Below, piece by piece: positions 42,060 through 63,988 of a stretch of DNA of 64,000 nt (its first letter is position 1; each line of letters opens with the position of its first letter). Made by a program: the position numbers and the translations under genes. Where the stretch lies: positions 1-64,000 of the IMG/VR virus record IMGVR_UViG_3300010938_000951, one strand, 5' to 3'. The notes under the pieces were generated by a model. The model saw only the letters and a program-made list of their open reading frames with translations, did not search any database and was not told the DNA's origin.

Positions 42060-42061
42060 AT

Positions 42062-42321: not shown

Positions 42322-42326
42322 TTTAT

Positions 42327-42403
42327 CAGGGAATGATGTTTAATGGCTAGCATCCTACCTTCGGAGAGTAGAAGTCCCGGTTCGAATCCGGGTTCCCTGA
42401 CCA
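42327..42403 (+). tRNA. tRNA-Pro(CGG)
   Basis: CAGGGAA/TTCCCTG-ACCA, loop TTCGGAG. Confidence 0.85.
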
Positions 42404-42815: not shown

Positions 42816-42889
42816 TCCGAGGTCGTTCAAAGGCAGGACGGGTCGCTGTTAACGACTCTATGTTGGTTCGATTCCAGCCCTCGGAGCCA
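42816..42889 (+). tRNA. tRNA-Asn(GTT)
   Basis: cloverleaf, loop CTGTTAA. Confidence 0.92.
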
Positions 42890-42892
42890 TAT

Positions 42893-42979
42893 TCTGCGGT
42901 AGCCTAATGGTAAGGCAGGCGGCTGTTAACCGCCCGGTGGTAAAACACTTTCTAGGTTCGAGTCCTAGCTGCAGAGCCA
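42893..42979 (+). tRNA. tRNA-Asn(GTT) with long variable arm
   Basis: loop CTGTTAA; extra arm GGTG-GTAAAA-CACT. Confidence 0.85.
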
Positions 42980-42987
42980 AATAATAC

Positions 42988-43342
42988 GGGGACTGATTAG
43001 ACTGGAATGATCCGTATTAGGTGTTGCGTTTGGTCAGTTCTGCGCAACGACAGGAGTTGTCACCGGAACTTTAACCCGGCCAATCTTCTGAGATGAATGC
43101 GGTAAGGACTACATTACTAATAGCGATCCGCAAGGACAACCCACTCCTTTACAGTACACAAGAGCGGTAGAAAATGCAAACTGAGTACCTGACAAACTTG
43201 ATAACCAGTAAAGCTTCAAGTGTAGGCGGTGAACTACTAAAATTTGCTGCGGACCTTATCGATATCCATAACAGGACTCTTTAAGCAAACCCGCTGTCTT
43301 TACTACCTCTTGTATTGAAATACAAGTTCTTGTCATCAATCT
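42988..43342 (+). ncRNA. unknown ~350-nt structured RNA
   Basis: no ORF; long-range pairings GACAGGAGTTGT/ACAAGTTCTTGTC and ACAAGAG(C)GGTAG/CTACCTCTTGT. Confidence 0.5.
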
Positions 43343-43344
43343 AT

Positions 43345-43419
43345 TCCGCTCTAGTGTAATTAGCACGACGATCCTTTTTCGGGTCGGGGGTCATGGTTCG
43401 AGTCCATGGGGCGGAGCCA
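43345..43419 (+). tRNA. atypical tRNA (T-rich anticodon loop, identity undetermined)
   Basis: TCCGCTC/GGGCGGA-GCCA; arm CGATC-CTTTTTCG-GGTCG. Confidence 0.65.
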
Positions 43420-43500
43420 AAGCGAGCCATAGAGGAACTTCCTTCTACTCATTTATTAACTGAAAACAGTTCTTCTGCTTTCTCGCTAACTTTTACTACT

Positions 43501-43674
43501 ATGGAAAAAATTGCAACATATAATTTGTCTGAATGTATTCATGCCCGCAATGGTTTAAATGAGCCTTTATGTGGGTTTGATCCTAAACAGGCAAAATTAA
43601 CAGACAACATAGAAGAAGTTGACTGTCCTAGTTGCAAGAAATATAAACAATTTCATCGTTCACAACCAATTTAA
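43501..43674 (+). CDS. small Cys/His protein
   Basis: CIH..LCG..VDCPSC. Confidence 0.5.
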   Translation: MEKIATYNLSECIHARNGLNEPLCGFDPKQAKLTDNIEEVDCPSCKKYKQFHRSQPI

Positions 43675-43689
43675 TACCATGAGAAAATT

Positions 43690-44118
43690 ATGTTTACATC
43701 TACCGGAATCTTGCATTATGATCCCGGCTTGGGATCTAAACAATATGACCCTTGGTGGGCTCTTCTAATCTGTGACGATGAAGTGTCTAGGTATTATGCC
43801 TGGTTATTAAAGAGAAATGGAGTAGAAGTTTATCCCAATGATAAAGGATTGTGGGGCACACACGTTTCAGTTTTGAAAGGTCAAATCCCAGAAAATACGA
43901 CTAATTGGGGGAAATACGAAGGCTACGAAGTAGAATTCCATTACAATCATCTTGTCCGTTATGATAACGGTAAACATGCTTGGGTGGATGTATATTCCGA
44001 AGATTTATCGTATATACGTCAAGAATTAGGATTCGAGGCAAAGCCCTGGTATCACTTGACAATAGGAAGATTAGTTAGGCCATATGCAGTAGACTTTACA
44101 AAGTATGGCATAACATGA
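43690..44118 (+). CDS. 2H phosphoesterase-like protein
   Basis: two HxS/T motifs: THVSV and YHLTI. Confidence 0.65.
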   Translation: MFTSTGILHYDPGLGSKQYDPWWALLICDDEVSRYYAWLLKRNGVEVYPNDKGLWGTHVSVLKGQIPENTTNWGKYEGYEVEFHYNHLVRYDNGKHAWVDVYSEDLSYIRQELGFEAKPWYHLTIGRLVRPYAVDFTKYGIT

Positions 44119-44132
44119 TATAACTGCTATAC

Positions 44133-44207
44133 GGTCCCGTCGTTCAATGGTTAGGACAGCACCTTGTCACGGTGCATACGAGGGTTCGATTCCCTTCGGG
44201 ACCGCCA
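44133..44207 (+). tRNA. tRNA-Asp(GTC)
   Basis: cloverleaf, loop TTGTCAC. Confidence 0.92.
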
Positions 44208-44216
44208 GCATATAAT

Positions 44217-44291
44217 GCCTCCGTACGCATCTGGTGAAGCGGGGTGATTGTCAATCATCTGAGGGCGGTTCGATTCCGCTCGGGGGCGCCA
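44217..44291 (+). tRNA. tRNA-Asp(GTC)
   Basis: cloverleaf, loop TTGTCAA. Confidence 0.85.
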
Positions 44292-44362
44292 AGCCAAATG
44301 CCTTGATAGGATTACATTGAACTGTTAATTCAAACCTATATCTTATCTAATTTTTGTTGGCT
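44292..44362 (+). ncRNA. Y-like scaffold RNA 5 (isolated Asn anticodon stem-loop)
   Basis: AGCCAA/TTGGCT, GATAGGAT/ATCTTATC; cargo TTGAA-CTGTTAA-TTCAA. Confidence 0.8.
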
Positions 44363-44366
44363 ACAT

Positions 44367-44445
44367 CGGACAAAAGGTAAGCTGGTGGCATCCGGAAGTC
44401 TTATAAACTTCTCATAGGAGGGTTCGATTCCCTCTTGTCCGACCA
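44367..44445 (+). tRNA. tRNA-Ile(TAT)
   Basis: CGGACAA/TTGTCCG-ACCA, GAAGT-CTTATAA-ACTTC. Confidence 0.8.
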
Positions 44446-44448
44446 TAT

Positions 44449-44525
44449 GGCACGGTAGTCCAAAGGCAGGAGACACCTGACTTAAAATCAGTTCAGTGTG
44501 GGTTCGAATCCCACCCGTGCTACCA
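44449..44525 (+). tRNA. tRNA-Leu(TAA), short variable loop
   Basis: loop CTTAAAA, CCA. Confidence 0.85.
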
Positions 44526-44557
44526 AATGATAATCTTGCGCAAGATTATCAGATAAA

Positions 44558-44702
44558 GACAGAATGCCCCGAAGGAATACATAGAACAGCAATTGAATGA
44601 AAATCAATAGATTGTAGGTGCGAATCCTACCTCTCCCACCAATAATAAGATATATGGGAGGGAAGCTAAATAAAACAAACTTCTTTCAAATCTTTGTCTG
44701 TC
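44558..44702 (+). ncRNA. Y-like scaffold RNA 6 (circularly permuted tRNA-Phe)
   Basis: GACAGA/TCTGTC; ATTGA-ATGAAAA-TCAAT, T arm, CTCTCCC-ACCA, linker, GGGAGGG. Confidence 0.8.
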
Positions 44703-44705
44703 AAT

Positions 44706-44781
44706 GGAGCTTGAGCAAGTGTGGTCATTGCATCGGTCTGAAAAGCCGACAAATCCGGTTCGATCCCGGAAGGCTCCACCA
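44706..44781 (+). tRNA. tRNA-Phe(GAA)
   Basis: loop CTGAAAA, CCA. Confidence 0.85.
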
Positions 44782-44790
44782 ACTACCAAT

Positions 44791-44865
44791 GGTCCTGTAG
44801 CTCAGTGGTAGAGCGCTTGCCTGAAGAGCAGGGCGTCGGGGGTTCAATTCCCTCCGGGACCACCA
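44791..44865 (+). tRNA. tRNA-Phe(GAA)
   Basis: loop CTGAAGA, CCA. Confidence 0.92.
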
Positions 44866-45219
44866 ATGAGAATTGTTCAGAAGCCTTGGGGCCATGAAGA
44901 AATCTGGGCCGAAACTGACAGTTATGTTGGTAAAATCCTAGTAATTAATCCTGGTCACAAACTTTCTCGACAATATCATAATTTCAAAGAAGAAACTTTT
45001 AGAGTACTAGAAGGTATTCTTTATCTTGAAATTGGCAATCCTGGTGATATAGATTTTGCTACTTATACTTTATATGAAGGAAATTCTTTTCATTGCCCGC
45101 CAAAAACAATTCATAGAATGATTTGTTCTACTGGCAATATTCAGGCAGTTAAAGTACTAGAAGTATCGACCAATCATTTGGATGATGTAGTAAGACTAGA
45201 AGATGACTATAAAAGATAA
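44866..45219 (+). CDS. cupin (mannose-6-phosphate isomerase C-terminal-like)
   Basis: KPWGHE, LSRQYH..KEET, IHR, DDVVRLEDDY. Confidence 0.85.
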   Translation: MRIVQKPWGHEEIWAETDSYVGKILVINPGHKLSRQYHNFKEETFRVLEGILYLEIGNPGDIDFATYTLYEGNSFHCPPKTIHRMICSTGNIQAVKVLEVSTNHLDDVVRLEDDYKR

Positions 45220-45394
45220 AATAGTAGAGTTAGAAATTGAAAGACTTTCTTTATTAGAAGTAGTAAGGCAATTTACAATACATGATTGCGATGCAAGAAT
45301 GTGGTGTGAACTAAATGAATTCTTAATAAAGATTGAAGAAAGAGCAGAAGAAATAAATCGTGCCATAGCTCAGTTGGTTAGAGCGCATGTCTGA
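45203..45394 (+). CDS. hypothetical protein overlapping tRNA-Ile
   Basis: short ORF. Confidence 0.4.
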   Translation: MTIKDKIVELEIERLSLLEVVRQFTIHDCDARMWCELNEFLIKIEERAEEINRAIAQLVRAHV

Positions 45395-45435
45395 TACACA
45401 TGAGGTCGCAGGTTCGACTCCCGCTGGCACGACCA
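45359..45435 (+). tRNA. tRNA-Ile(GAT)
   Basis: loop CTGATAC, CCA. Confidence 0.92.
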
Positions 45436-45444
45436 AGATAACAT

Positions 45445-45519
45445 GGGATGTTAGTTCAACGGTGAGAACGGAAGTCCGATAAACTTCAGACAATGGTTCA
45501 ACTCCATTACATCCTACCA
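45445..45519 (+). tRNA. tRNA-Ile(GAT), C33 variant
   Basis: GAAGT-CCGATAA-ACTTC, CCA. Confidence 0.8.
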
Positions 45520-45520
45520 C

Positions 45521-45660
45521 TGAAACAAATGCTCGCAGAGGATTACATCGCATATCCAGCGGGTTACGTGAGTGCGAATCTCACTCTCAGCTCATTATGC
45601 TGAGATCGTCTAGCAGTCTAGGACACCTAAAAAATAGTCTTCTCAATTCTTGTTGTTTCA
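45521..45660 (+). ncRNA. Y-like scaffold RNA 7 (circularly permuted Gly-type tRNA)
   Basis: TGAAACAA/TTGTTTCA; CGC-ATATCCA-GCG, T arm, TCTCAGC/GCTGAGA, D arm. Confidence 0.8.
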
Positions 45661-45667
45661 CAATTAT

Positions 45668-45863
45668 GCCTCCTATCATGGCTGGAAACTGATAGCGATA
45701 CCACCAGGCGGTCCCAGAGGGATGCAGCAGGGGAAGTACAAGAGTATCAAACAGAAGGGACGCCTTCTAGCCTGCTCACATGGTTGGAAACTGTGACGCG
45801 GTCTTGGTCGCGATAGACCAAGTAGTAAAACCGCAAGCCTGCCCACATGGTCGGAAACTGTGG
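45668..45863 (+). repeat. three copies of a hairpin with conserved core CATGGYYGGAAACTG
   Basis: copies at 45668, 45770 and 45837 with co-varying stems. Confidence 0.75.
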
Positions 45864-45866
45864 AAA

Positions 45867-45943
45867 GAATCGTCTAGCTCAATGGTAGAGCTACGTCACT
45901 AGTGACGACGTGGATCTGGGTTCGAATCCCAGGATGATTCCCA
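45867..45943 (+). tRNA. His-like tRNA (G-1:C73) with 9-nt anticodon loop
   Basis: GAATCGTC/GATGATTC-CCA; ACGTC-ACTAGTGAC-GACGT. Confidence 0.7.
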
Positions 45944-45945
45944 GC

Positions 45946-46097
45946 GAAGCAAATGCCCCGAAGGTTTACATTTGAGAAACTGTATTATCGCAAGATAGTC
46001 GTGGGTTCGAATCCCACATCACCGCAAGGTGATTGGCTGAGTGGTCTAAAGCGACAGTGCCGCAAGGCATGCTAACTTTCAAATTTTTTGTTGCTTC
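45946..46097 (+). ncRNA. Y-like scaffold RNA 8 (YrlA-like, permuted class II tRNA)
   Basis: GAAGCAA/TTGCTTC; variable arm, GTGGG-TTCGAAT-CCCAC, acceptor ATCACC-GCAA-GGTGAT, D arm. Confidence 0.85.
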
Positions 46098-46098
46098 A

Positions 46099-46228
46099 TC
46101 TCCCGCTAGTTTAAAACGAAACACCTGTTATAGAGGACGTATACTTCAATCTATGAGGGGTTAGTAGTCCAGAAGAATACCTTCCAGTGAGGAAGGAGAT
46201 GCGAGTGCAAGTCTCGCAAGGGAGACCA
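46099..46228 (+). ncRNA. tRNA-like RNA with ~55-nt insert between D and anticodon arms
   Basis: TCTCCC/GGGAGA-CCA, CCTTC-CAGTGAG-GAAGG, GCGAG-TGCAAGT-CTCGC. Confidence 0.65.
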
Positions 46229-46232
46229 ATTT

Positions 46233-46559
46233 ATGGAAAAGAAAATTCCAACTATGAAGGATCTCAAAGAAGGTCCGCCATTACTCTGTCCAATTTGTGA
46301 CAGACCAAATTATTTTCCATCCGACCATCATATGGTACCAAAGTCTAGGGGCGGTAAAACTACCGAAACTATTTGTGAAGATTGCCATAAAGCAATTCAT
46401 GCGCATTTCACCAATAAAGAATTAGAAGAAACGTATCATACGCCAGAAGCTTTGCTATCTCATGAGGGGTTTGCAAAACAGATTAAATTCCTTTCTAAAC
46501 AGGATCCTGGTGGCCGAACCAAAACGAAAAAGAATAAAGATCGTTTGAGGCGAGAATGA
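46233..46559 (+). CDS. small HNH nuclease-like protein
   Basis: CPIC..HHMVPKSRGG..CEDCHKAIH. Confidence 0.8.
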   Translation: MEKKIPTMKDLKEGPPLLCPICDRPNYFPSDHHMVPKSRGGKTTETICEDCHKAIHAHFTNKELEETYHTPEALLSHEGFAKQIKFLSKQDPGGRTKTKKNKDRLRRE

Positions 46560-46825
46560 GTAGGATTATTGAATTAGTAAAAGCTGGCGCCAAGATTCAA
46601 CAAGAAATTGTTGATGAATTAGTAGTTGATGTCTTAAAAGACGTCGAATTACATCACGAAGAACTTGACATAGCTTTGTCGTTAGATTTTGATAAAATAA
46701 AAGATCCAAATGATAAAGATTTAGCCATTTATCTGGCATTGGATGCTATACGTGATGCGAGAGAAACATTATCTATAATGAAGAAGTTATTAAGAGCCAG
46801 CGAGCTTTTAGATCGTATCGGGTGA
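46556..46825 (+). CDS. hypothetical protein
   Basis: ATGA overlap. Confidence 0.55.
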   Translation: MSRIIELVKAGAKIQQEIVDELVVDVLKDVELHHEELDIALSLDFDKIKDPNDKDLAIYLALDAIRDARETLSIMKKLLRASELLDRIG

Positions 46826-46828
46826 TTT

Positions 46829-47020
46829 ATGGAAGAGAAGAAAGATTTTTGTGAAAAGTGTCAAAAAGAAGTTTGGTCGCTGTATTTACATAAACACTGT
46901 CCTGAATGTGACTCAGATCCAAGCCAGCATGAGCTAAGAAATTATGACATGATGTGGCACGAAGGAGACATTCATTGTGGTAAGTGCGGAACATTTGTTA
47001 GATATTATGACGCCGGCTAA
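46829..47020 (+). CDS. small zinc-finger protein
   Basis: three CxxC pairs. Confidence 0.55.
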   Translation: MEEKKDFCEKCQKEVWSLYLHKHCPECDSDPSQHELRNYDMMWHEGDIHCGKCGTFVRYYDAG

Positions 47021-47086
47021 TCGTTCGATATATCTATTACAACCTGCGTGAGCCCTAGTGGCCACGGTCGAATTAAAGGTGGTAAT

Positions 47087-47674
47087 ATGAATAAAATTCA
47101 AAGATTGCAAATGAGGGGCGTGAGGCTCACGTCCGAGGCAGACTGGGAGAAAGTTATAATTTCCCCTGAAGAGGTAGAAGAAGGCATTAGGCTCGGTACG
47201 CTGCAAGAGATGGAGTCCGCAAAACTGGGATTAAAAGATCGATCATTCTCCGGAGATGAAGGAGATTCGTTAGCAAGGTCAATCGCAGCCAAACAGTTCG
47301 AATTTGCAATTAGACGATGGGGTGGTGGTACTGCTCGCATTGTGCAAATTAATGAGTTCCATGACTTCCCGGACGTTGGGAAAGTGAATGCTCGATATAC
47401 ATTCAACACTGGTTACGGGATGATTATTACCAACCGTGATCAGGGTAAAGTACCAATGATCTTGGGAACGGGTAAATGTCCTGAGTTTTATTTAATGGGA
47501 TGGTTTATTCCAGATTATGCAAAACAAATTATTTTTAAAGTCCACCAAAAACGCAATGAAGATTGTGAAACCGATTTTGGTTTCTTGCAGGAAATGAAAG
47601 ACCACGAATGTTGTCAGCTTAATATGCAAATGCTTTTTCCTATGTGGTCTTTCAATAAAGAACTACTAAAATGA
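47087..47674 (+). CDS. hypothetical protein
   Basis: AAGGTGG RBS before ATG. Confidence 0.65.
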   Translation: MNKIQRLQMRGVRLTSEADWEKVIISPEEVEEGIRLGTLQEMESAKLGLKDRSFSGDEGDSLARSIAAKQFEFAIRRWGGGTARIVQINEFHDFPDVGKVNARYTFNTGYGMIITNRDQGKVPMILGTGKCPEFYLMGWFIPDYAKQIIFKVHQKRNEDCETDFGFLQEMKDHECCQLNMQMLFPMWSFNKELLK

Positions 47675-47796
47675 TATAAGTTTAGGAAGCAAAACAAAGT
47701 ACCTGCTGTTCAAGGGAAAGTTTTGATGAGGAGAGCCGGAACAGGGCAATCCTAAGTTAGGGGTGGACTCAACATCCAACCGCCGCTTCCGCTTAT

Positions 47797-47873
47797 GGGC
47801 TCTTAGTGTTAACGGTAGCACACCTGACTCTTAATCAGGCAAGTCCTCGGTTCGAATCCGGGAGAGCCCACCA
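47797..47873 (+). tRNA. tRNA-Lys(CTT)
   Basis: loop CTCTTAA, CCA. Confidence 0.9.
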
Positions 47874-48104
47874 GATGTATCACAAATGGGAATTCGGGAA
47901 AGGTCCCGCATATAGAATTGGTTTTCAATTCCTACATGTATGGTGGTCATTTACTTCCAAATGTTTTGGAATTAATTTAGGCTCGCGTTATAGAATTTTT
48001 ATTCAGCGCCTTGCTTTTCCAAACTCAAAACCTTATGTTAGGTTTGAGTTTCATCTTCCCAATAAGAAGATGCCAAATCATCCGAAGTGTTACAGTTTTG
48101 AAAT

Positions 48105-48182
48105 GGGTTCGTAGTATAATTGGATTATTACCTCTCCCTCTTAAGGAGCACGATGCGGGTTCGAGTCCCGCTGAACCCACCA
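48105..48182 (+). tRNA. tRNA-Lys(CTT)
   Basis: loop CTCTTAA, CCA. Confidence 0.82.
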
Positions 48183-48195
48183 ATACGAGGTAAGT

Positions 48196-48396
48196 ATGAC
48201 TCGCAATGAAATCAAAGATTTGATCATGGTAATTCTTGGTCAAGCCGATTATGATCTGATGAAAGCATATGATCCAGAAACGGCTGAAGAACCCGAGTAT
48301 GCCGAATCAGAAATGGAAAGATTAATCGATACAGTAGTGGAACATCTCAAAAAGTTAGAAAAGAAAAAGACTAAGAAGGTAAAGAAAAAGAAGTAA
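48196..48396 (+). CDS. hypothetical protein
   Basis: GAGGT RBS. Confidence 0.55.
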   Translation: MTRNEIKDLIMVILGQADYDLMKAYDPETAEEPEYAESEMERLIDTVVEHLKKLEKKKTKKVKKKK

Positions 48397-48397
48397 T

Positions 48398-48471
48398 GGG
48401 TTTATAATTCAATGGCAGAATAGCGGTCTTTTAAACCGTCCATCAGGGTTCGATTCCCTGTGAACCTACCA
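48398..48471 (+). tRNA. tRNA-Lys(TTT)
   Basis: loop CTTTTAA, CCA. Confidence 0.9.
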
Positions 48472-48493
48472 CATGCATGATATATTAAAAGTC

Positions 48494-48949
48494 ATGCCAG
48501 ATCAAAGTTTCAAAGTTTGTAGTATTTGTGGTGAAGATAAGCATATTCACTTGTTTAATAATAGGGCTCGTAGTCCTGATGGTAAACAAGTATTTTGTCG
48601 TCAATGCGGCAAAGAAAAATCTAGAAAATATTATCGCGACAATCAATCACATCATAAAAGTGTAGTCTATTCTAGAAAGATAGATCATATACAAAAATCA
48701 AAAGAGTTTGTTCTTTCATTTTTAAAGGAACATTCTTGTATAGATTGCGGAGAACGAGATCCTGTTGTTCTGGATTTTGATCATGTTAGAGGCGAGAAAT
48801 ATCGCAATATTTCTCAGATGGTACATAGAGGAAATTCTTTAGAGAAGATTAAATTAGAAATAGAGAAATGTGAAGTACGATGTGCTAATTGTCATCGCAG
48901 AAAAACTGCAAAGGAATTAGAGTATTTTACATATATTATGGGGTCATAG
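48494..48949 (+). CDS. HNH endonuclease
   Basis: CSIC/CRQC N-terminal finger; CIDCG..LDFDH..CANCHR. Confidence 0.85.
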   Translation: MPDQSFKVCSICGEDKHIHLFNNRARSPDGKQVFCRQCGKEKSRKYYRDNQSHHKSVVYSRKIDHIQKSKEFVLSFLKEHSCIDCGERDPVVLDFDHVRGEKYRNISQMVHRGNSLEKIKLEIEKCEVRCANCHRRKTAKELEYFTYIMGS

Positions 48950-49015
48950 TGTTAGTGGTAGCATAGTGGACTTTTAATCCATCGGTCTCGGTTCGATTCC
49001 AGAGTGGCCCTACCA
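48940..49015 (+). tRNA. tRNA-Lys(TTT)
   Basis: loop CTTTTAA, CCA. Confidence 0.85.
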
Positions 49016-49036
49016 AGCATAATTAGTAATAGTAAT

Positions 49037-50056
49037 ATGAGAATTATAATGAACCTCATTTTACTTATTGTCTTAATAATATTTATTCCATTTCATGAAT
49101 TAGCTTGTATTAATTCAAATATATCTCCAACAATACAGCAACCTATTCCTTCTAGAATAGAAAAATCTAAAGTGGTTCTAATTACTTTGGATGGTGTAAG
49201 ATGGCAAGAGATTTTCAACGGAACTGATCCTCTTCTCTATCATGGAAAAAAGATATCAGCCCGCGACTTACTTCCCAATATTTATTATCAGTTTGTTGAT
49301 AGGGGCATGGTGGTTGGTAAGGATTCAACATTTGTAGCTACTGGTCCGAACCATATTTCTTTGCCGGGGTATCTTGAAATTATGAGAGGGCATCCATCTT
49401 CTGATTGTCAAGATAATGATTGTGAGCCCCGTCTGCAAGAAAATACTATCGCTGACTTATTTGACAAGTCAGCAATTTTTGCTTCTTGGGATACTATTAG
49501 AAAAACAGTTGGTAAAAATACAGATAAGTTTGTAGTTAACTGTGGCCGTAATTTTCGTTCTACTGGCTGGAAACAAGCCGAACTAGATGATAATCAAACT
49601 TTTCCAGAAGTATGGGGAGATCCAATTTATAGACCAGACGATCTCACAGAGAAAGCTGCTATAGATTATTTACAGTATTATAGCCCAGATTTCTTTTGGG
49701 TTTCTCTGGGGGATACTGATGAGTGGGCTCATTATGGAGACTATGATAAATATTTAGAATCTTTACAACAGGCTGATAAGTTTATAGGTATGGTTGTGGA
49801 GATGGTGAAATCTGGCGAAGATGGTCAAGATTTTACATTTATAGTTACAGCAGATCATGGTCGTGGATTACAATGGCAATCACATGGCTGGGATAGAGAA
49901 TCCGCCAGAGATTGGGTGATGATGGCGGGAAGAAAGATACCGGCACAAGGTTTCGTATCTTATCCTACCAAAAAATCTCTCTCAAATATTTTTCCTACCG
50001 TTAAGCATTTAGTAACTGGAGTTCATACTAAGAATTCTTTATTATCTAAGGATTGA
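49037..50056 (+). CDS. alkaline phosphatase superfamily protein
   Basis: ITLDGVRWQE, SLPGY, DTDEWAH, TADHGRG. Confidence 0.85.
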   Translation: MRIIMNLILLIVLIIFIPFHELACINSNISPTIQQPIPSRIEKSKVVLITLDGVRWQEIFNGTDPLLYHGKKISARDLLPNIYYQFVDRGMVVGKDSTFVATGPNHISLPGYLEIMRGHPSSDCQDNDCEPRLQENTIADLFDKSAIFASWDTIRKTVGKNTDKFVVNCGRNFRSTGWKQAELDDNQTFPEVWGDPIYRPDDLTEKAAIDYLQYYSPDFFWVSLGDTDEWAHYGDYDKYLESLQQADKFIGMVVEMVKSGEDGQDFTFIVTADHGRGLQWQSHGWDRESARDWVMMAGRKIPAQGFVSYPTKKSLSNIFPTVKHLVTGVHTKNSLLSKD

Positions 50057-50057
50057 G

Positions 50058-50606
50058 ATGAAGACTACTATTATCAATTTGTATGGTGGACCTGGTGCAG
50101 GAAAATCCACCTCAGCCTCATATTTGTATTATCTGTTAAAATGTCAACAAGAAAACGTTGAATTAGTTCGTGAATACGTTAAGAATTGGGCATGGGAAAA
50201 CCGACCATTCGGAGTGTATGATGAACTATATTTTCTAGGTAAACAAGTAAGACATGAAAGTATGCTTTTTGGTAAAGTCAAATACATTGTTACTGATGCT
50301 CCGGTGTATATGACAGCCTACTATGCTGATCTTTATTGTAGCAAAGTATTTGCCCAAGGAATTGAGAAAGCTGCTACTGCCTTTTATCAACAAGCTAAAG
50401 ATGATGGACATAATCATGTTCATGTTTATTTAAAACGCTTGCGTCCTTATCAAGCCGAAGGGCGCTATCAATCTGAGCAGGAAGCCTTGTCAGTTGATGA
50501 CGGTGTGCTTAAGATGTTGGCAAGACTGGATGTTCCAGTTATTCATGCCGCTCCTGATGAAGAAGATTTAAAAAGAGTTTTAGAGGATATTCGCAAAGGA
50601 CAATAA
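50058..50606 (+). CDS. NadR-like P-loop kinase/ATPase
   Basis: INLYGGPGAGKST, VREY, IVTD, GRYQ. Confidence 0.8.
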   Translation: MKTTIINLYGGPGAGKSTSASYLYYLLKCQQENVELVREYVKNWAWENRPFGVYDELYFLGKQVRHESMLFGKVKYIVTDAPVYMTAYYADLYCSKVFAQGIEKAATAFYQQAKDDGHNHVHVYLKRLRPYQAEGRYQSEQEALSVDDGVLKMLARLDVPVIHAAPDEEDLKRVLEDIRKGQ

Positions 50607-50607
50607 T

Positions 50608-51021
50608 ATGGTTGAAACTTTCAAAGACCTTGTCGGTGAGGATGTAAAAACTCCTGAAGACATTGATGCTAAACTTAAAGAAAAGCTTGGCATTGGACTT
50701 CAAGAAATGTCATATGCGCTTTGCGATTCATTAAGGCAAAGAGCCGAAGAGGTAGCAGAAGATTGCTATAGTGTTGCTCCTTATGGAGACTATAGTAAAA
50801 TGATTGAAGATCCAGAAGGGGTAGCGAAATTTTTCAGAGATGAAGCTTCAAAGCCCGAGCATTGGAAATTAGAATATCTAGAAGTTCGAAAGAAAGGCGA
50901 TCAGCTCATCGAATTTGTTTTTACTAACTCAGCAGTAGATGATGGCGACATTCTCAAAGGTTTTGTTTTCGTAGGGTTTAGTGGAACCATACGACATGCT
51001 TTTTGTCAGGTTCACACATGA
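50608..51021 (+). CDS. hypothetical protein
   Basis: AAGGA RBS. Confidence 0.6.
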   Translation: MVETFKDLVGEDVKTPEDIDAKLKEKLGIGLQEMSYALCDSLRQRAEEVAEDCYSVAPYGDYSKMIEDPEGVAKFFRDEASKPEHWKLEYLEVRKKGDQLIEFVFTNSAVDDGDILKGFVFVGFSGTIRHAFCQVHT

Positions 51022-51030
51022 AAAAAATCA

Positions 51031-51246
51031 TTGACCATTGAAGAGAGGGTGGATATCCTACTTCGTGAAGGAGTAGATAAACCCAAGAAGTGGGCGGCTG
51101 TTCATGGATATGATGAACCTACTTGGGGAACAAACGATTCTCATGGTTGGGCCAAAGAATATAAAAAGCTTCGTGAACATCATCTTGAAGAAACTAAATT
51201 TCTTTTTGAGGTGATTGGGGAATTAGTAAAGAGAATTAACAAATGA
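51031..51246 (+). CDS. hypothetical protein
   Basis: short ORF with TTG start. Confidence 0.45.
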   Translation: MTIEERVDILLREGVDKPKKWAAVHGYDEPTWGTNDSHGWAKEYKKLREHHLEETKFLFEVIGELVKRINK

Positions 51247-51473
51247 AAAAGATTCTTTTATTATGTTTAGTTTTGTTTGCTTGTGATGAAGAGACTCGTA
51301 AGCAATGGAATCCAACTCCACAAGAGAGTGCGCAAGGAATTCGTTATGTTAAAGATAATCGCACTGGATTATGCTTTGTTTACAATAACATAGGCATGTC
51401 TGCTCAAGGTGGTGGAGGCGATGTATATACTAATGTACCTTGTACTCCAGAAGTAGAGAAGCTAATAAAGTGA
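51243..51473 (+). CDS. small lipoprotein
   Basis: MKKILLLCLVLFAC lipobox. Confidence 0.65.
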   Translation: MKKILLLCLVLFACDEETRKQWNPTPQESAQGIRYVKDNRTGLCFVYNNIGMSAQGGGGDVYTNVPCTPEVEKLIK

Positions 51474-51521
51474 TATATAATAAGTAAGTTGTAAGTCCAA
51501 CTTTTTAAATGGAGAAACAAT

Positions 51522-51623
51522 ATGCTTTCTACTTTGACTTTTGTTATGGTAGCTTGTTTATTCGCAAACCTCGCCTATGAAAAGGGCGGAAAGCTTGTCG
51601 AATTAGTTAAGAGCAAGTTCTAA
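51522..51623 (+). CDS. 33-aa membrane peptide
   Basis: GGAG RBS, hydrophobic, followed by hairpin. Confidence 0.5.
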   Translation: MLSTLTFVMVACLFANLAYEKGGKLVELVKSKF

Positions 51624-51685
51624 TACCTTAATAGAAGGTGGACTTGATTGGGCGCCTTCTATCTAATTAAAAAAATTTGACAGGC

Positions 51686-51713
51686 TTGACGTCTGGTAAT
51701 AAAGTGTTATAAT
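51686..51713 (+). promoter_or_regulatory. sigma70-like promoter
   Basis: TTGACG-N16-TATAAT, 12 nt before tRNA-Ala. Confidence 0.75.
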
Positions 51714-51725
51714 AGTAAGCGTTAT

Positions 51726-51801
51726 GGGGCTGTAGCTCAGTTGGGAGAGCGTCTCGTTTGCACCGAGAAGGTCAGGGGTTTGAATCCCCTCAGCTCCACC
51801 A
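51726..51801 (+). tRNA. tRNA-Ala(TGC)
   Basis: G3:U70, loop TTTGCAC. Confidence 0.93.
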
Positions 51802-51939
51802 TAACTCACTGGCCGGATACGAAACACAATTCGCGAATGTTTCATTATGTTATCCGGTGTCAGATTGAGTAAAAGTTTGGCGATGTACAACTCGCTACAA
51901 GTCCTGGACATGACTTGGATACGGAAACTGTCCGGTAAT

Positions 51940-52015
51940 GGGGCCTTAGCTCAATTGGGAGAGCGTCACGCTGGCAGTGTGAAGGTCGCGGGTTCGACCC
52001 CCGCAGGCTCCACCA
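51940..52015 (+). tRNA. tRNA-Ala(GGC)
   Basis: G3:U70, loop CTGGCAG. Confidence 0.93.
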
Positions 52016-52018
52016 TAT

Positions 52019-52117
52019 ATCCCGCAATTCGATATAATCTCTGCTGGCTGTCTTATCGCGGCTGAACATAGGTTGGCACGGACAGAGAACAAGGTGCAAT
52101 TCCTTGGCGGGATACCA
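52019..52117 (+). ncRNA. tRNA-like RNA (acceptor, T arm and CCA; non-canonical core)
   Basis: ATCCCGC/GCGGGAT-ACCA; CAAGG-TGCAATT-CCTTG; CTCTG/CAGAG encloses ~40 nt. Confidence 0.65.
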
Positions 52118-52122
52118 AATTA

Positions 52123-52323
52123 ATGAGTAAGATTGATTGGTCAAAACACGAGATAGACATGTGGGGCTACTATTGTGAGTCCTGGTGTAAAGCTTGTGAA
52201 AAAGATCGTCGTGTTTGTGAGAAGTGCGGCCTAAACTATGGGGCTGGCCAATGGCACAGTATAGAGCAATGTGCTAAGGTTATTGCCGATGAAAAGGCAA
52301 AACAACTCTCTTTTCCATTCTAA
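52123..52323 (+). CDS. small Cys-rich protein
   Basis: CxxC motifs. Confidence 0.5.
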   Translation: MSKIDWSKHEIDMWGYYCESWCKACEKDRRVCEKCGLNYGAGQWHSIEQCAKVIADEKAKQLSFPF

Positions 52324-52505
52324 TTTTCGAATTGTTGATATAAACTACGCAACTGATTGTATAGACTTATCCGCATGGATCGCTAGTTAAACTGGCGTTA
52401 CAATTCACCTCTTGGAGAAGGGAGGGCTCATCATGAGCGGTAAAAGTAGTAAAGGCATTAGAGACTAATAAGAAAGAAACGTTTTCCCAACGTTTATCAA
52501 TCCAG

Positions 52506-52859
52506 ATGGCCAAGGTCATTAGAACTTGGGCATTCATCATAGGCCAACTAGTTTTTGTGGTTGGCTGGTTTAGTGGACATCACTTCTTCCCACAGCATTT
52601 ACCTTTCGAGGTATTACAAATCTTACTTCTCACTGAAGGTTGCTGTATTGGATCAGTTTTCTTGATGAATCAGCATCGCGAGCAATCATTGGATCGTCGC
52701 ATTGCAATAAATGATTACATTGTTAATTGTCAGATGAGAAATGATGTGAAAGAATTACTCAAAGACGCCGAAAAGAAAAATAATTTTTGGTGTGTAGGTT
52801 GCGGGGAACCGCGATATAAATGTGCTTGCGAAGAGCAAACGCAACTTCGTCAAAGCTAA
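52506..52859 (+). CDS. membrane protein (DUF1003-like)
   Basis: TWAFII..TM..PF..L...LMNQ.R. Confidence 0.5.
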   Translation: MAKVIRTWAFIIGQLVFVVGWFSGHHFFPQHLPFEVLQILLLTEGCCIGSVFLMNQHREQSLDRRIAINDYIVNCQMRNDVKELLKDAEKKNNFWCVGCGEPRYKCACEEQTQLRQS

Positions 52860-52895
52860 AGTTTCTATGAATATTCAAGTATCATAGATACTCAT

Positions 52896-52969
52896 TCAGG
52901 GATCGTCTAATGGTAGGACCGCGGCCTTTGACTCCGCAGATACAGGTTCGAATCCTGAGCCCTGAGCCA
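52896..52969 (+). tRNA. tRNA-Gln(TTG)
   Basis: loop CTTTGAC, GCCA. Confidence 0.85.
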
Positions 52970-52985
52970 GGTCAGTTAAGTATAC

Positions 52986-53059
52986 TGGAGCATCGTCTAA
53001 CGGCAGGACAACGGACTCTGACCCCGTTTATCTAGGTTCGAATCCTAGTGCTCCAGCCA
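52986..53059 (+). tRNA. tRNA-Gln(CTG)
   Basis: loop CTCTGAC, GCCA. Confidence 0.9.
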
Positions 53060-53063
53060 GTAT

Positions 53064-53137
53064 TCTCCGATCGTCTAATGGTAGGACGGGTCGCTCTGAA
53101 CGATCAAATCGAGGTTCGAATCCTCAGCGGAGAACCA
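53064..53137 (+). tRNA. tRNA-Gln(CTG)
   Basis: loop CTCTGAA, ACCA. Confidence 0.82.
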
Positions 53138-53297
53138 GCAACAAATGCCAGCTAGGATTACATAGCTCGCAACTATTTTCCCCGCCAGCCCGAGAGGGCA
53201 AATAAACTTTTATTTTTTATGTTACTAACACGGGGAAATGTTCAAGTCGGTCTGAAAAACCGATAAGGAACTCTTCTTGGCACCTTTAGTTGTTGCT
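53137..53297 (+). ncRNA. Y-like scaffold RNA 9 (two anticodon-like stem-loops)
   Basis: AGCAACAA/TTGTTGCT, GGATTACAT; ATAG-CTCGCAA-CTAT and TCGGT-CTGAAAA-ACCGA. Confidence 0.7.
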
Positions 53298-53303
53298 AAA
53301 TAT

Positions 53304-53404
53304 AGCAGATTGGAGCAGCGGTAGCTCGCCAGGTTCACAATGGGGCTGATGCCCTATAAGGATACCCTGGAGGTCGTGTGGTTCGATTCCCTCATCTGCA
53401 ACCA
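53304..53404 (+). tRNA. initiator-type tRNA-Met with 25-nt insert in the anticodon
   Basis: 1:72 mismatch, TGGAGCAG..GGTAGCTCG D arm; CCAGG-TTCA[25 nt]TAC-CCTGG. Confidence 0.8.
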
Positions 53405-56821: not shown

Positions 56822-57718
56822 ATGAAGAAACTAGTTTGTATTTGCTCGCTGTTATTGGCAGCGATTGCAGTAGGATGTGGTTCTCAAGTAGTTGAGTTCC
56901 AAGAAGCAGTTGGTAACAGCGATGCTGGTAGTCCTCCAACTCTCCTTGAGCCACCTCCTGCAGAAGGGTGTGTCGATCAGAATTGTCCACTTGGACAAGC
57001 CTGTCGAGATGGAGTTTGTACTGTAGTCGATCCTTGTGAAGGTGTAATCTGTCCACCTGGTGAAGTTTGCCAGAATGGTGGTTGTGCCGTTGTTGATCCA
57101 TGTGCCGGTGTTATCTGTCCAGAAGGATCGTCTTGCAAAGATGGGGCCTGTGTTCCAAATGATCCTTGTGCTGGTGTTACCTGTCCAGAAGGAGCTACCT
57201 GCCAAAATGGAACTTGTGTAACTCCAGACCCATGTGCTGGTGTGGTATGTGAGGCAGGTACTTGCGTCAATGGTCAGTGTGTCATTTCTGACCCTTGTGC
57301 GGGGGTAGTTTGTGATGGCGGAACTTGTGTCAATGGTCTGTGCGTACCAAATGACCCTTGTGCCGGTGTCACCTGTCCAGAAAATTCTACTTGCCAAAAT
57401 GGCACTTGTGTTCCAAATGATCCCTGTGCTGGCGTAACTTGTCCTCCAGGATCTGAGTGTCGTGGCGGTACTTGTGTAGTAACTGATCCATGTGCTGGTG
57501 TAGTCTGTCCAGAAAGCAGAGTTTGCCGAGATGGCGTCTGTGTCTGTGATGGAGATCATGATGATGATAAGGTTTGCCGTCCAGGTAAAACTTTGATTTG
57601 TCACCGCGCTGGTCCACATGGCAAGAAAGTGCAGCTCTGTGTTGGTAATGCAGCAGTCCCGGCTCACCTCAAGCATGGTGATAAGGTTGGGGATTGCGAT
57701 CAGTGTAATTGCCACTGA
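56822..57718 (+). CDS. Cys-rich tandem-repeat lipoprotein
   Basis: AVGC lipobox; about 10 repeats of DPCAGVxCPxGxxCxxGxCV. Confidence 0.85.
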   Translation: MKKLVCICSLLLAAIAVGCGSQVVEFQEAVGNSDAGSPPTLLEPPPAEGCVDQNCPLGQACRDGVCTVVDPCEGVICPPGEVCQNGGCAVVDPCAGVICPEGSSCKDGACVPNDPCAGVTCPEGATCQNGTCVTPDPCAGVVCEAGTCVNGQCVISDPCAGVVCDGGTCVNGLCVPNDPCAGVTCPENSTCQNGTCVPNDPCAGVTCPPGSECRGGTCVVTDPCAGVVCPESRVCRDGVCVCDGDHDDDKVCRPGKTLICHRAGPHGKKVQLCVGNAAVPAHLKHGDKVGDCDQCNCH

Positions 57719-57741: not shown

Positions 57742-57782
57742 AAATGACCTACACCGTAAAAAGTGTAGGTCATTCTATTTTT
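57742..57782 (+). terminator. intrinsic terminator
   Basis: AATGACCTACAC/GTGTAGGTCATT plus T run. Confidence 0.8.
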
Positions 57783-57797: not shown

Positions 57798-57825
57798 TTG
57801 ACGCGCTATTTATTAAGAATACATT
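57798..57825 (+). promoter_or_regulatory. sigma70-like promoter
   Basis: TTGACG-N16-TACATT. Confidence 0.65.
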
Positions 57826-57830
57826 GATGG

Positions 57831-58169
57831 GTGAAAGTTATGAGCTTACCTTGGTCACGAGATATGCAATTAGATCCTGGCACATTTGGAGGGTCTCCAG
57901 CATGTCATGTATTAGTTGATATGATGAACAAAAATGTGATTCCTGTTCAGGAAAAACATCGAGTTCTATCATTCATTAGCGGTACTATTTTGCATTTCAA
58001 GGCCATCTCTGCCATCAAAGAAAGAGGTATAAGGGCACGGGTTATGGTGCTTTTGAAAAATGATCTGTTTTCCAGAATAGATCAAATGCCATATCCAGCT
58101 CATTTCAACTCTTATCTGAAGAACGTAGTAAATCACCACTTCAGGCGATACTTAAAAGAAGTAGTCTAG
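57831..58169 (+). CDS. hypothetical protein
   Basis: ORF whose end overlaps RNase P helix P1. Confidence 0.5.
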   Translation: MKVMSLPWSRDMQLDPGTFGGSPACHVLVDMMNKNVIPVQEKHRVLSFISGTILHFKAISAIKERGIRARVMVLLKNDLFSRIDQMPYPAHFNSYLKNVVNHHFRRYLKEVV

Positions 58170-58488
58170 ACAATCGCTCTGCAAGGAGAGGAAAGTCGGA
58201 GCTACATAGGACAGTCTGCTGGCTAACGGCCAGGCGTAGTAATACGACGGAAAGTGCAACAGAAAATAAACCGCCCGCAAGGGTAAGGGTGAAATGGTGA
58301 GGTAAGAGCTTACCGCATGTTTGGCGACAAATATGGCAAGGCAAACCCCAGATGTAGCAAGCTAAACAGAGAGTGACTTGTCCGGTCAATACTCTCGGGT
58401 TAGTGCTGGAGCCGTCAAGTAATTGTCGGCCAAGATTAATGATTGTCTCGATTTATAGACAGAACTCCGCTTATAGGGCTACTTCTTT
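58155..58488 (+). ncRNA. rnpB: RNase P RNA (bacterial type A)
   Basis: P1 AAGAAGTAGTC/GGCTACTTCTT; GAGGAAAGTCGGAGC, GGAAAGTGCAACAGAAA, GGGTGAAA..GGTAAGAGC, GGCAAACCCC, ACAGAACTCCGCTTA with compensatory P4. Confidence 0.95.
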
Positions 58489-58510
58489 TAAGTTCTTTTA
58501 AGGAATTATT

Positions 58511-59029
58511 ATGCAGAAAAAGAAAGTTATTGCCATAGCTCCCAAAGTGGTATCACAATGGGAAGCCGCCCGCCATGAATATAAAAAACTAGAAGATCAA
58601 ATTTTAGATCGTATTGATTATATTCTCAATACTTGGTTTTCTATTTATGGAGCTAAGTTAGAATATTGGTATTTTGATGGGGCGGCTGAAGGTGAGGTGG
58701 GCGATCTTCATCGATTTATGAATACAGATTCTATCTGGAGTTTTTACGTTGAAACTAAAAATTACCCAGATAATGATATGGTATTTATCGATAAAGACGG
58801 CGATGAATATAGTTGGCAATCAGAAATTCCCACTCGTTGGCTTTATGATGATTCCTTTGAGGAAGAAATTATAAAAGGTAAAGCCGAATATGAGAGACGA
58901 GAAGAGGAGCGTCTTGCAAAGAAAAAGCAAAAGACGGCTAATAAAAAAGCTCAAGACGAAAAACTCGTAGAAGAAGCTAAGAAAAAACTTTCAAAAGAAG
59001 AGTTAGCAGCTCTTCGTAGAACATTATAA
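58511..59029 (+). CDS. hypothetical protein
   Basis: AAGGA RBS. Confidence 0.65.
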   Translation: MQKKKVIAIAPKVVSQWEAARHEYKKLEDQILDRIDYILNTWFSIYGAKLEYWYFDGAAEGEVGDLHRFMNTDSIWSFYVETKNYPDNDMVFIDKDGDEYSWQSEIPTRWLYDDSFEEEIIKGKAEYERREEERLAKKKQKTANKKAQDEKLVEEAKKKLSKEELAALRRTL

Positions 59030-59040: not shown

Positions 59041-59733
59041 ATGGCAGATAAAGTTACCACCGTTAGCGCAAAAGGTTGCGTTGTAACAGATTTTGATACG
59101 GCTACATTTGCACTCTCATTTAATGAGTTTGCTCCTAAAGCCAAAGACGCAAAGCTGAAGCTAAAGAAAGGTGCAGCTAAGATTACAGCGGCCCTTGATG
59201 ATCTCAAGAAACGTGGGTTGGAGTTTTTAACCAACAACTATCGCACTAATATTACAGTGCAACCAAATTATGTTTATGACCGTTCGTCCGGCCAAAACAG
59301 AATGGAAGGACAGAAGGCAACTTACTCTGTAACGTTCCAAACTCCTACACTAGAAATGGTTAGTGAAGCATACGATCTACTTTCTGAATTGGAAGTGAAT
59401 GAACTTTCAATTAATTCTCCTGCTTATTCTGTCAGGTCCGAAGCGCAATTTAAGCAACAAGCATTGGAAGATGCTTGGAAGGTAGCTCAAGTTTTGTTTG
59501 CTAATCAGTGCAAGGTTCTTGGGTTTGATGAAACTAAATTCTCTGTTGATAGCTGGCAGGTTAATTATAGTGGCCATGACCATGGTGGATTTGCTAAGGG
59601 TCGTAGCTATTCAAACTCTGTGCTAGCGGCATCAGCTTCGGCTGATTATGGTGATGAAGCCATTGAACTAAATGCTGGCCGTGCTATCATTGAAGTAGTT
59701 CTGACTGTCGATTACGTTCGTACCGGATCATGA
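59041..59733 (+). CDS. SIMPL (DUF541) domain protein
   Basis: VTTVSAKG...D.A, ITVQPNY.Y, QQALEDA pattern. Confidence 0.7.
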   Translation: MADKVTTVSAKGCVVTDFDTATFALSFNEFAPKAKDAKLKLKKGAAKITAALDDLKKRGLEFLTNNYRTNITVQPNYVYDRSSGQNRMEGQKATYSVTFQTPTLEMVSEAYDLLSELEVNELSINSPAYSVRSEAQFKQQALEDAWKVAQVLFANQCKVLGFDETKFSVDSWQVNYSGHDHGGFAKGRSYSNSVLAASASADYGDEAIELNAGRAIIEVVLTVDYVRTGS

Positions 59734-60401
59734 AAATTAAGCTAGCCTATCCTAAAATTCCTGATACTTTAGACTGTCCACTCAAGCAATGTATTGCTTT
59801 TGAAAAATTGGATGGAACTAATTTGCATTGGGTTTGGAATAGGGAAAAAGGCTGGCATGCTTTTGGTACTCGCCGAGATAGATTTAATCTAGATGAACAA
59901 GGAATTGCTTCTTTCAACCAAGCACATCCCGGACTGGAGGAAGCAATTTCCTTGTTTAGAAAATCGTATGAGCATCTCGCTGAGTATCCACTTAAACATA
60001 AATATGGTCCAATATCAGAATCCACGGGTGACGTAATTCTATTTACAGAGTTCCTTGGAGATAAATCTTTTGCTGGTTCTCACCAAAAAGGCGACCCCAA
60101 AAGATTAGTATTATTTGATGTAATGACTGATAAAGGAATAACTCCACCAGATCAGTTTGTGATTGATTTTGGACAGTTTGATGATATTCCGGGATATTAT
60201 ATTCCACAAATTGTTTTTAGTGGAAAGTTTTCAGGACAATTATTTGTAGATGTTAGGAAAAACAAGTTCAAAGTAAACGAGGGCGTGGTTGTCAAAGGTA
60301 TGTTTGCCGGGCAAGTTTACATGGCCAAGATTAAGACGACTGACTATTTAGAGCGCCTAAAGAAAGAATTTAAAAACGATTGGAAAAATTATTGGGAATG
60401 A
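59730..60401 (+). CDS. RNA ligase (Rnl2-like adenylyltransferase domain)
   Basis: YPKI, EKLDGTN, TEFLG, LFDV, EGVVVK, AKIKT. Confidence 0.85.
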   Translation: MKIKLAYPKIPDTLDCPLKQCIAFEKLDGTNLHWVWNREKGWHAFGTRRDRFNLDEQGIASFNQAHPGLEEAISLFRKSYEHLAEYPLKHKYGPISESTGDVILFTEFLGDKSFAGSHQKGDPKRLVLFDVMTDKGITPPDQFVIDFGQFDDIPGYYIPQIVFSGKFSGQLFVDVRKNKFKVNEGVVVKGMFAGQVYMAKIKTTDYLERLKKEFKNDWKNYWE

Positions 60402-63712: not shown

Positions 63713-63788
63713 GTCGCAGTACCCAATCGGATAAGGGAGCTGTCTGCAAAACAGCCATTAGCAAGTTCGACTCTTGCCTGCGACTCCA
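63713..63788 (+). tRNA. tRNA-Cys(GCA)
   Basis: loop CTGCAAA, U73-CCA. Confidence 0.9.
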
Positions 63789-63798
63789 CACCTAATAC

Positions 63799-63888
63799 GG
63801 AAGGGTGCGTGAGTGGCTGAAACGGCTACCCTGGAAAGGTAGTGATCTCGCAAGGGGTCCGAGGGTTCGAATCCCTCCTCTTCCGCCA
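63799..63888 (+). tRNA. tRNA-Ser(GGA)
   Basis: loop CTGGAAA, long variable arm, GCCA. Confidence 0.93.
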
Positions 63889-63898
63889 AATATAATAT

Positions 63899-63988
63899 GG
63901 AAACTTGGCCGAGCGGTTTAAGGCGCTAGTCTTGAAAACTAGAGATCCTGAAAGGGGTCCGGGGGTTCGAATCCCTCAGTTTCCGCCA
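63899..63988 (+). tRNA. tRNA-Ser(TGA)
   Basis: loop CTTGAAA, long variable arm, GCCA. Confidence 0.95.

Follow-up and report, generated by a model that had tools for sequence, protein, structure and literature searches.

A bacteriophage of roughly 490 kb from soil or groundwater carries its own complete copy of the RNase P ribozyme, normally a cellular housekeeping RNA. The copy has been kept intact through the evolution of its phage clade and most likely trims the 5' ends of the 65 tRNAs that the phage also encodes. The gene lies in a 64,000-nt stretch of DNA (hereafter the window) that forms the first 64 kb of the 266,899-bp IMG/VR record IMGVR_UViG_3300010938_000951. An earlier note, made from the sequence alone, had placed an intact RNase P RNA at 58155–58488 in a phage-like genome, and this observation is confirmed. 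Its interpretation, that a viral copy would allow independent maturation of the tRNA array and could open the acceptor loops of permuted tRNAs, is only partly supported. The intact type-A RNA, the viral genome, purifying selection on the RNA and a large tRNA array bearing the determinants that a type-A RNase P reads all held, whereas independence from the host, permuted tRNAs and Y-like RNAs did not find support.

A covariance-model scan of the window against Rfam 15, the search that the note had proposed for its claim, returned RNaseP_bact_a (RF00010) at 58158–58489 on the + strand, within 3 nt of the note's coordinates. The match scores 279.9 bits against a gathering score of 100 (E 2.3e-90), covers model positions 1–367 of 367 without truncation, and is the type-A match that was kept within clan CL00002. 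The alignment yields a complete type-A secondary structure with every standard helix from P1 to P18. In RNA numbering, where position 1 is 58158, P1 pairs 1–11 with 317–328, P2 pairs 12–18 with 284–290, and P3 pairs 20–23 with 28–31 under a GCAA loop. P4 pairs 37, 38 and 40–44 with 308–314, leaving U39 bulged. P5, P7, P8, P9 (GUAA loop), P10, P11, a short P12 (GCAA loop), P13, P14 (GCGA loop), P15, P16, P17 and P18 (GUAA loop) follow, so that the specificity domain P7–P14 is complete, with a conserved J11/12 (ACAGAAAAUAAA), and loops L9, L14 and L18 are GNRA tetraloops. The P6 pseudoknot is formed by GGAC at 58209–58212 (positions 52–55) and the L17 loop bases GUCC at 58380–58383. The 3' side of the L15 internal loop, GGGUU at 58397–58401, contains the GGU motif that pairs with the tRNA 3'-RCCA end. 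The P15–L15–P16–P17 module and P6 are specific to type A, type B having P15.1, P5.1 and P10.1 instead. The RNA is short (332 nt) only because P3 (4 bp) and P12 are minimal. Of 135 positions that are at least 97% conserved in 82 reference RNase P RNAs, 131 are retained, and two of the four differences are the two sides of one P6 pair.

The long-range helix P4 had been singled out in the note as showing compensatory changes that indicate selection. Its 5' strand, AGTCGGAG in the DNA and AGUCGGAG in the RNA, lies at 58194–58201 with the bulged U at 58196, and overlaps conserved region CR-I (GAGGAAAGUC at 58188–58197). Its 3' strand, CTCCGCT (CUCCGCU), lies at 58465–58471 within conserved region CR-V (ACAGAAC...GCUUA). 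The two strands form 7 bp around the conserved bulged U and, compared with the consensus AGUCCGGG/CCCGGCU, two pairs are changed on both sides. However, this variant is not special to the phage. The 16-mer GAGGAAAGTCGGAGCT hit at least 120 bacterial genome stretches, of which 109 are genuine RNase P RNAs, mostly from Clostridia and Syntrophomonadaceae. The P4 changes alone therefore do not prove selection in the phage, which is demonstrated instead by comparison among phage copies, as described below.

The genome is that of a huge tailed phage and not a cellular chromosome, a possibility that the note had named as one that would overturn its claim. The record encodes a large terminase (TerL, 235946–237991 of the record), a portal (238069–239943) and a head-maturation protease domain (within 245151–248846), together with DNA polymerase, an SbcC-like nuclease, RIIA, NAD-dependent ligase, NAMPT and an EF-G-like factor. 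All 65 tRNA genes are on the + strand, about 82% of the sequence is covered by + strand ORFs under the standard code, and GC content is fairly even (0.34–0.42 in 10-kb bins). No tyrosine integrase (PF00589) was found in this record or in a complete 480,838-bp relative (G006); serine integrases were not searched for. IMG/VR cut the contig, flagged the record 'provirus' and estimated it to be 62% complete. The exact protein encoded upstream of the RNA is also on a JGI contig of 490,849 bp, at about 281.8 kb, indicating that the record is the right-hand 54% of a contig about as long as complete relatives and that the RNase P locus lies deep inside it. The left 224 kb of that contig was not examined. 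Genes around the RNA are typical of phage accessory regions, comprising an HNH endonuclease, an OmpA-domain protein, a SIMPL-domain protein, an RNA ligase family gene (59730–60401, + strand; PF09414 and phrog_548) and a CYTH-domain protein.

The RNA recurs at the same syntenic locus in five related megaphage records and five further contigs. A conserved CR-I pattern found 26 IMG/VR contigs, and Rfam confirmed RNase P RNA in 15 of the 20 loci scanned. Many of these sit at contig ends and look like host flank, but two lie inside contigs of 359 kb and 268 kb amid tRNA arrays. The phage terminase has 177 relatives in IMG/VR at 68–91% identity. Among 19 of those records, RF00010 is present in five (designated G001, G002, G006, G011 and G012), including three of the five records that are at least 97% complete. 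In these and the window's own record (G000), the RNA occupies one slot, with a 308-aa protein and the HNH gene upstream and the CYTH gene and the tRNA-Cys/Ser array downstream; flanking protein identities run from 25% to 95%. The RNA ligase gene is a neighbor in five of the six records and was not found beside the RNA in G011. Near-complete relatives G013 and G015, and G014 at the same syntenic slot, lack the RNA, and G014 and G015 keep the neighborhood but lack the unit of the RNA and its upstream ORF. The RNA is therefore dispensable for this kind of phage.

The six RNAs form one clade (SH-aLRT 97), and their divergence tracks the TerL tree. On that tree, genomes with the RNA fall on both sides of the deepest split, while G014, which lacks it, nests beside G011 and G012. 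The simplest history is thus one old acquisition followed by losses. We sought the donor among bacteria with the same P4 variant, but the phage clade did not group with the Clostridia and Syntrophomonadaceae in which that variant is widespread; the reference sample is biased, and no donor was identified. A search with the NAD ligase for a host returned mainly viral clusters, and the OmpA and SIMPL domain genes only hint at a Gram-negative host.

Comparison of the phage copies shows selection on the structure. The six copies are 66–89% identical, and over the 101 base pairs of the Rfam-derived structure, 586 of 606 cells are canonical pairs (96.7%) and 61 pairs show changes on both sides that preserve pairing. 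Sliding the 3' partner by 1–3 nt gives 32–41% canonical cells and 8–12 such pairs. In P4, 5 of 7 pairs covary and all 42 cells are canonical, and in P6, all 4 pairs covary and 24 of 24 cells are canonical. Four different P4 sequences all keep 7 bp plus the bulge. With the five further copies, 93.8% of cells are canonical and 67 of 101 pairs are compensatory, against 15–22 in slid controls. P4 with its bulged U is kept in all 11 copies, L15 GGGUU and J5/15 CAA are invariant, and L9, L14 and L18 remain GNRA tetraloops while their letters change. Length differences are confined to peripheral elements, mainly the P12 loop (insertions of 12, 31, 164 and 412 nt), with smaller ones in P3, the P13 loop and P16. 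In another phage lineage, a 288-nt form lacks P13 and P14, which suggests at least a second independent viral acquisition.

The tRNA genes of the phage carry features that match a type-A enzyme. Rfam matched 27 tRNAs in the window and ARAGORN called 31. About 29 genes, including a tRNA-Gln triplet at 52896–53137, lie at 41203–53401 (+), interspersed with HNH, PD-(D/E)XK and other small genes, and are the presumed substrates. A tRNA-Cys, tRNA-Ser, tRNA-Ser group with 10-nt spacers lies at 63713–63988 (+), and the array continues beyond the window, giving 65 tRNAs in the record. Of the 65 genes, 63 encode 3'-CCA, matching the retained GGU motif, 49 have U at −1, against a 30% background, and 47 have G at +1; such features are determinants for type-A RNase P RNA, and A248/N−1 is discussed in PMC6582537. 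Of 64 spacers, 22 are 16 nt or shorter. With spacers that short, one RNase P cut both matures the 5' end of a tRNA and frees its upstream neighbor, and separating polycistronic pre-tRNAs is stated to be the essential role of RNase P in E. coli (PMC7049720). The record also encodes two PolyA_pol/CCA-adding-type nucleotidyltransferases and a Ro60 orthologue which, with the RNA ligase, make up a broader tRNA and RNA maintenance toolkit.

A gene for the RNase P protein was not found. No RnpA (PF00825) match exists in G000, G001, G002, G003 (a further related record), G006, G011 or G012, three of which are 97–100% complete, while the same search hit 10 control genomes. This does not affect membership of the RNA family, but the partner must come from the host or be a novel protein, and tRNA maturation is probably not independent of the host.

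Immediately upstream of the RNA, at 57840–58169 (+), is an orphan gene for a 109-aa basic protein (pI about 10) whose TAG stop codon (58167–58169) lies inside the P1 5' strand. The protein has 52 homologues, all unnamed and of similar length, none with a Pfam domain. All 10 of its loci that were examined have RF00010 directly downstream, from a 29-nt overlap to a 55-nt gap. These are G000, G001, G002, G006 and G011, and five of five independently fetched contigs of its most distant homologues (44–54% identical). The protein is absent from all 11 clade records that lack RNase P RNA, including G013 and G015, and from G012, which has the RNA. Its AlphaFold model (pLDDT 86) is a four-helix protein with no structural match, the best Foldseek E-value being about 0.9 in both PDB and AFDB clusters. 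An RnpA-like fold was therefore rejected. A terminator-like hairpin (57743–57774; 12-bp stem followed by a T run) and a weak sigma-70-like promoter match (57798–57825) may together mark the start of an ORF-plus-RNA transcription unit, although these are consensus matches only and not evidence of function.

DNA of the phage is found in soil and groundwater metagenomes. RNA libraries mostly held the universally conserved core of other organisms' RNase P RNA. A few short, low-depth contigs in soil and rhizosphere metatranscriptomes were 92–96% identical over the clade-specific, variable P15–P18 region, with no coverage of the flanking ORFs, which is suggestive only and does not show transcription.

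We consider it likely that this is a functional, phage-encoded catalytic RNA subunit of RNase P. In this view, a clade of roughly 430–490-kb tailed phages acquired a bacterial type-A rnpB gene once and has kept it at one locus while it diverged together with the phages. During infection the RNA would be transcribed with the small upstream ORF, released from that transcript, and assembled with a protein cofactor, most simply the host's RnpA, and the resulting enzyme would cut the 5' leaders from the phage's own tRNA precursors. Those precursors would come from densely packed arrays in which RNase P cleavage is what separates neighboring tRNAs. Extra RNase P RNA would keep tRNA maturation from becoming limiting, or from failing if the host's supply of the RNA is shut off. 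The analysis itself establishes the identity and completeness of the RNA, its viral location, selection on its structure and the matching substrate determinants, whereas transcription, catalysis, the protein partner and the benefit to the phage are inferences; cleavage of pre-tRNA was not assayed. Activity in vivo would depend on a partner not demonstrated here, and the host was not identified, nor whether its RNase P is limiting or incompatible. The RNA is also about 5 kb from the nearest tRNA on either side and overlaps the stop codon of an ORF, so it must be cut out of an mRNA-like transcript by an unknown route.

A more speculative possibility, which we regard as unlikely but not excluded, is that these megaphages carry a self-contained two-gene RNase P cassette, in which the 109-aa protein serves as a virus-specific subunit or chaperone that replaces or supplements RnpA. 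The consistent linkage to the RNA, the absence of the protein from records lacking the RNA, its RnpA-like size and pI, and the lack of RnpA genes favor this reading. If true, it would be a new kind of RNase P holoenzyme, and the first ribozyme-based RNase P encoded by a virus. However, the predicted fold is all-helical rather than the alpha/beta RnpA fold and matches no known RNA-binding protein, G012 has the RNA without the protein, and the linkage could simply reflect co-transcription or a shared mobile cassette. No protein–RNA complex was modeled, and whether the protein is a cofactor, a regulator or just a co-transcribed neighbor was not distinguished.

Still less probable is that the RNA is functional but acts against the host or on other substrates, soaking up host RnpA to starve host tRNA maturation, or processing phage mRNAs or tRNA-like RNAs. 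Without an RnpA gene, any phage RNA competes for the host protein, a 118-nt tRNA-like RNA with an acceptor stem, T-arm and CCA exists at 22617–22734, and the locus sits among RNA-repair and surveillance genes (RNA ligase, CYTH and Ro60). A decoy, however, would need only the protein-binding part, whereas here the whole catalytic core, the specificity domain, the L15 GGU motif and all tertiary-contact loops are conserved and covary, and the U−1, G+1 and CCA of the phage's own tRNA genes fit their being the substrates. Host DNA at a provirus edge, a recently captured passenger or an assembly chimera, as the 'provirus' flag, the many CR-I hits at contig ends and the host-flank nature of the only INPHARED match (below) might suggest, is very unlikely, since the locus is 58 kb inside the part kept as viral and about 282 kb inside the source contig, both flanks are syntenic in five other viral records from different samples, no integrase was found in the PF00589 search, and the full-length gene has co-diverged with TerL with abundant compensatory change.

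The phage RNA shares its architecture and conserved nucleotides, including CR-I to CR-V, with bacterial type-A RNase P RNA (rnpB; E. coli M1 RNA, Thermotoga maritima P RNA). It differs in being encoded by a virus, without an rnpA gene in the same genome, in being compact, in overlapping the stop codon of a conserved orphan ORF and in being absent from sister phages. Cyanelle and plastid rnpB genes (PMC4264200, PMC6330054) are likewise bacterial-type genes kept in a small, dependent genome that does not encode the protein subunit, so that the partner must be supplied from elsewhere. Organelle copies, however, descend vertically from an endosymbiont and some are functionally defective (PMC4264200), while the phage copy was acquired horizontally and keeps a full consensus core. 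Phage RNAs are classical RNase P substrates, as in processing of the T4 tRNA cluster and maturation of P1/P7 C4 antisense RNA, so phages do depend on this activity, but there the enzyme is entirely the host's. Huge phages carry tRNAs, tmRNA/SmpB, aminoacyl-tRNA synthetases, release factors and ribosomal proteins (Al-Shayeb et al. 2020, PMC7162821), a theme that this phage shares. RNase P is not mentioned in that study or in the leading jumbo-, huge- and mega-phage papers examined, the P finder paper mentions no phage or virus, and we found no published report of a virus-encoded RNase P RNA in a literature collection without most subscription journals. A blastn search of INPHARED with the RNA found only two 'Acinetobacter phage MD-2021a' contigs, and the one inspected is a bacterial contig in which rnpB lies outside the prophage and its integrase, next to coaD and fdx, and was rejected as a phage precedent.

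RNase P RNA is one of the few ribozymes shared by all cellular life and has been treated as a purely cellular or organellar gene. A copy kept under selection in a virus lineage would be a new item among the translation-related genes of huge phages, extending their known reach from tRNAs and translation factors to the enzyme that matures tRNAs. It also suggests that tRNA 5' processing can limit the usefulness of large phage tRNA arrays. For RNase P research, the phage copies supply natural, compact, rapidly diverging type-A variants with rich covariation and a candidate new protein partner. Practically, RNase P RNA hits should no longer be read automatically as host contamination when virus contigs are curated.

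The other RNAs proposed in the note were also sought. A whole-record scan for T-arm, acceptor and CCA modules, as expected of permuted tRNAs, found 52, of which 51 lie inside ordinary tRNAs and the remaining one is the 3' end of the unpermuted 118-nt tRNA-like RNA. Although a Ro60 gene is present, no Y-RNA family matched at E <= 0.01 in 32.5–54.5 kb. The record has two tRNAs with a CUA anticodon, but an alternative genetic code was rejected, as the standard code already gives 82% + strand ORF coverage and recoding adds little. Finally, the downstream 172-aa ORF (58511–59029) had no relatives in IMG/VR by pattern search, and tblastn found it beside the RNA only in G011; it is not part of the conserved unit.

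A basic 109-aa orphan ORF lies immediately upstream of the RNase P RNA at 57840–58169 (+), and its stop codon falls inside helix P1 of the RNA. The protein family has 52 members and was found directly upstream of an RNase P RNA in all 10 loci examined. The predicted fold is a four-helix protein with no structural match. Just before this ORF, at 56822–57718 (+), is a gene for a 298-aa acidic protein with a lipoprotein-like N-terminus and about 12 tandem Cys-rich repeats (DPCAGV.CP motif), which occupies a locally GC-rich stretch (0.46) and has no Pfam or PHROG match.

Variation in the architecture of the RNA was observed in other contigs. Two phage RNase P RNA genes, in the sequences designated L252 (1992–2786) and L254 (2329–2831), have very large insertions in the P12 loop, of 412 nt and 164 nt, respectively, and the 412-nt insert contains a called 144-aa ORF. 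Two IMG/VR contigs, L032 (204,762 bp) and L014 (73,655 bp), carry an identical-scoring 288-nt RNase P RNA (166.9 bits) that lacks P13 and P14, at 7749–8036 (+) and 340–627 (−), respectively. Membership of these contigs in the same TerL clade was not established, as the record of L014 (G003) was searched only for RnpA and that of L032 was not examined. The 288-nt RNA sits inside a tRNA array, 9 nt after the upstream tRNA match, and its last base abuts the next tRNA. Its 3′ end would therefore be made by RNase P itself.

Short, low-depth contigs in soil and rhizosphere metatranscriptomes (runs X15, X18 and X22), aligning within 58284–58494, are 92–96% identical to the clade-specific P15–P18 part of the RNA, with no coverage of the flanking ORFs. 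These may be transcripts of related phages. The GenBank record named ‘Acinetobacter phage MD-2021a’ (CAKLQF020000022.1, region 43356–51538) is a bacterial contig containing a prophage. Its RNase P RNA match lies outside the integrase, next to coaD, fdx and a tRNA-Met gene, and is unannotated.

The IMG/VR record that begins at position 1 of the window, and which is flagged ‘provirus’, is the right-hand 266,899 bp of a 490,849-bp JGI contig (3300010938|Ga0137716_10000005). Several related megaphage records (G006 and G011–G014) carry the same flag. No integrase was found in the two records searched, namely the record under study (G000) and G006, so the flag may be an artefact of cellular-looking tRNA and translation genes.

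We also identified a 118-nt tRNA-like RNA at 22617–22734 (+) that had been missed by both ARAGORN and Rfam. It has a perfect 7-bp acceptor stem, a discriminator A, CCA, and D-arm-like and T-arm elements, while the middle, of about 65 nt, forms a long interrupted stem plus a second long arm (MFE −44.6 kcal/mol, z −2.8). This RNA is a possible RNase P substrate of unknown role. Odd tRNA calls were made at 41203–41282, 41327–41403, 43345–43419 and 53304–53401. Two of these are found by Rfam only, one of them 98 nt long, and ARAGORN assigns two others 4-nt anticodons (ttaa, tttt). Outside the window, at 176544–176700 of G000, are two adjacent tRNAs with a CUA anticodon (amber suppressors, labeled Pyl by ARAGORN), although the standard genetic code fits the ORFs well.

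The region 33424–38318 encodes a Ro60 orthologue with TROVE and Ro60 vWA domains (33424–35115), followed by an unknown 558-aa ORF, a microbial-type PARG (36920–37780) and a GIY-YIG protein. No Y-RNA family matched nearby at E ≤ 0.01.
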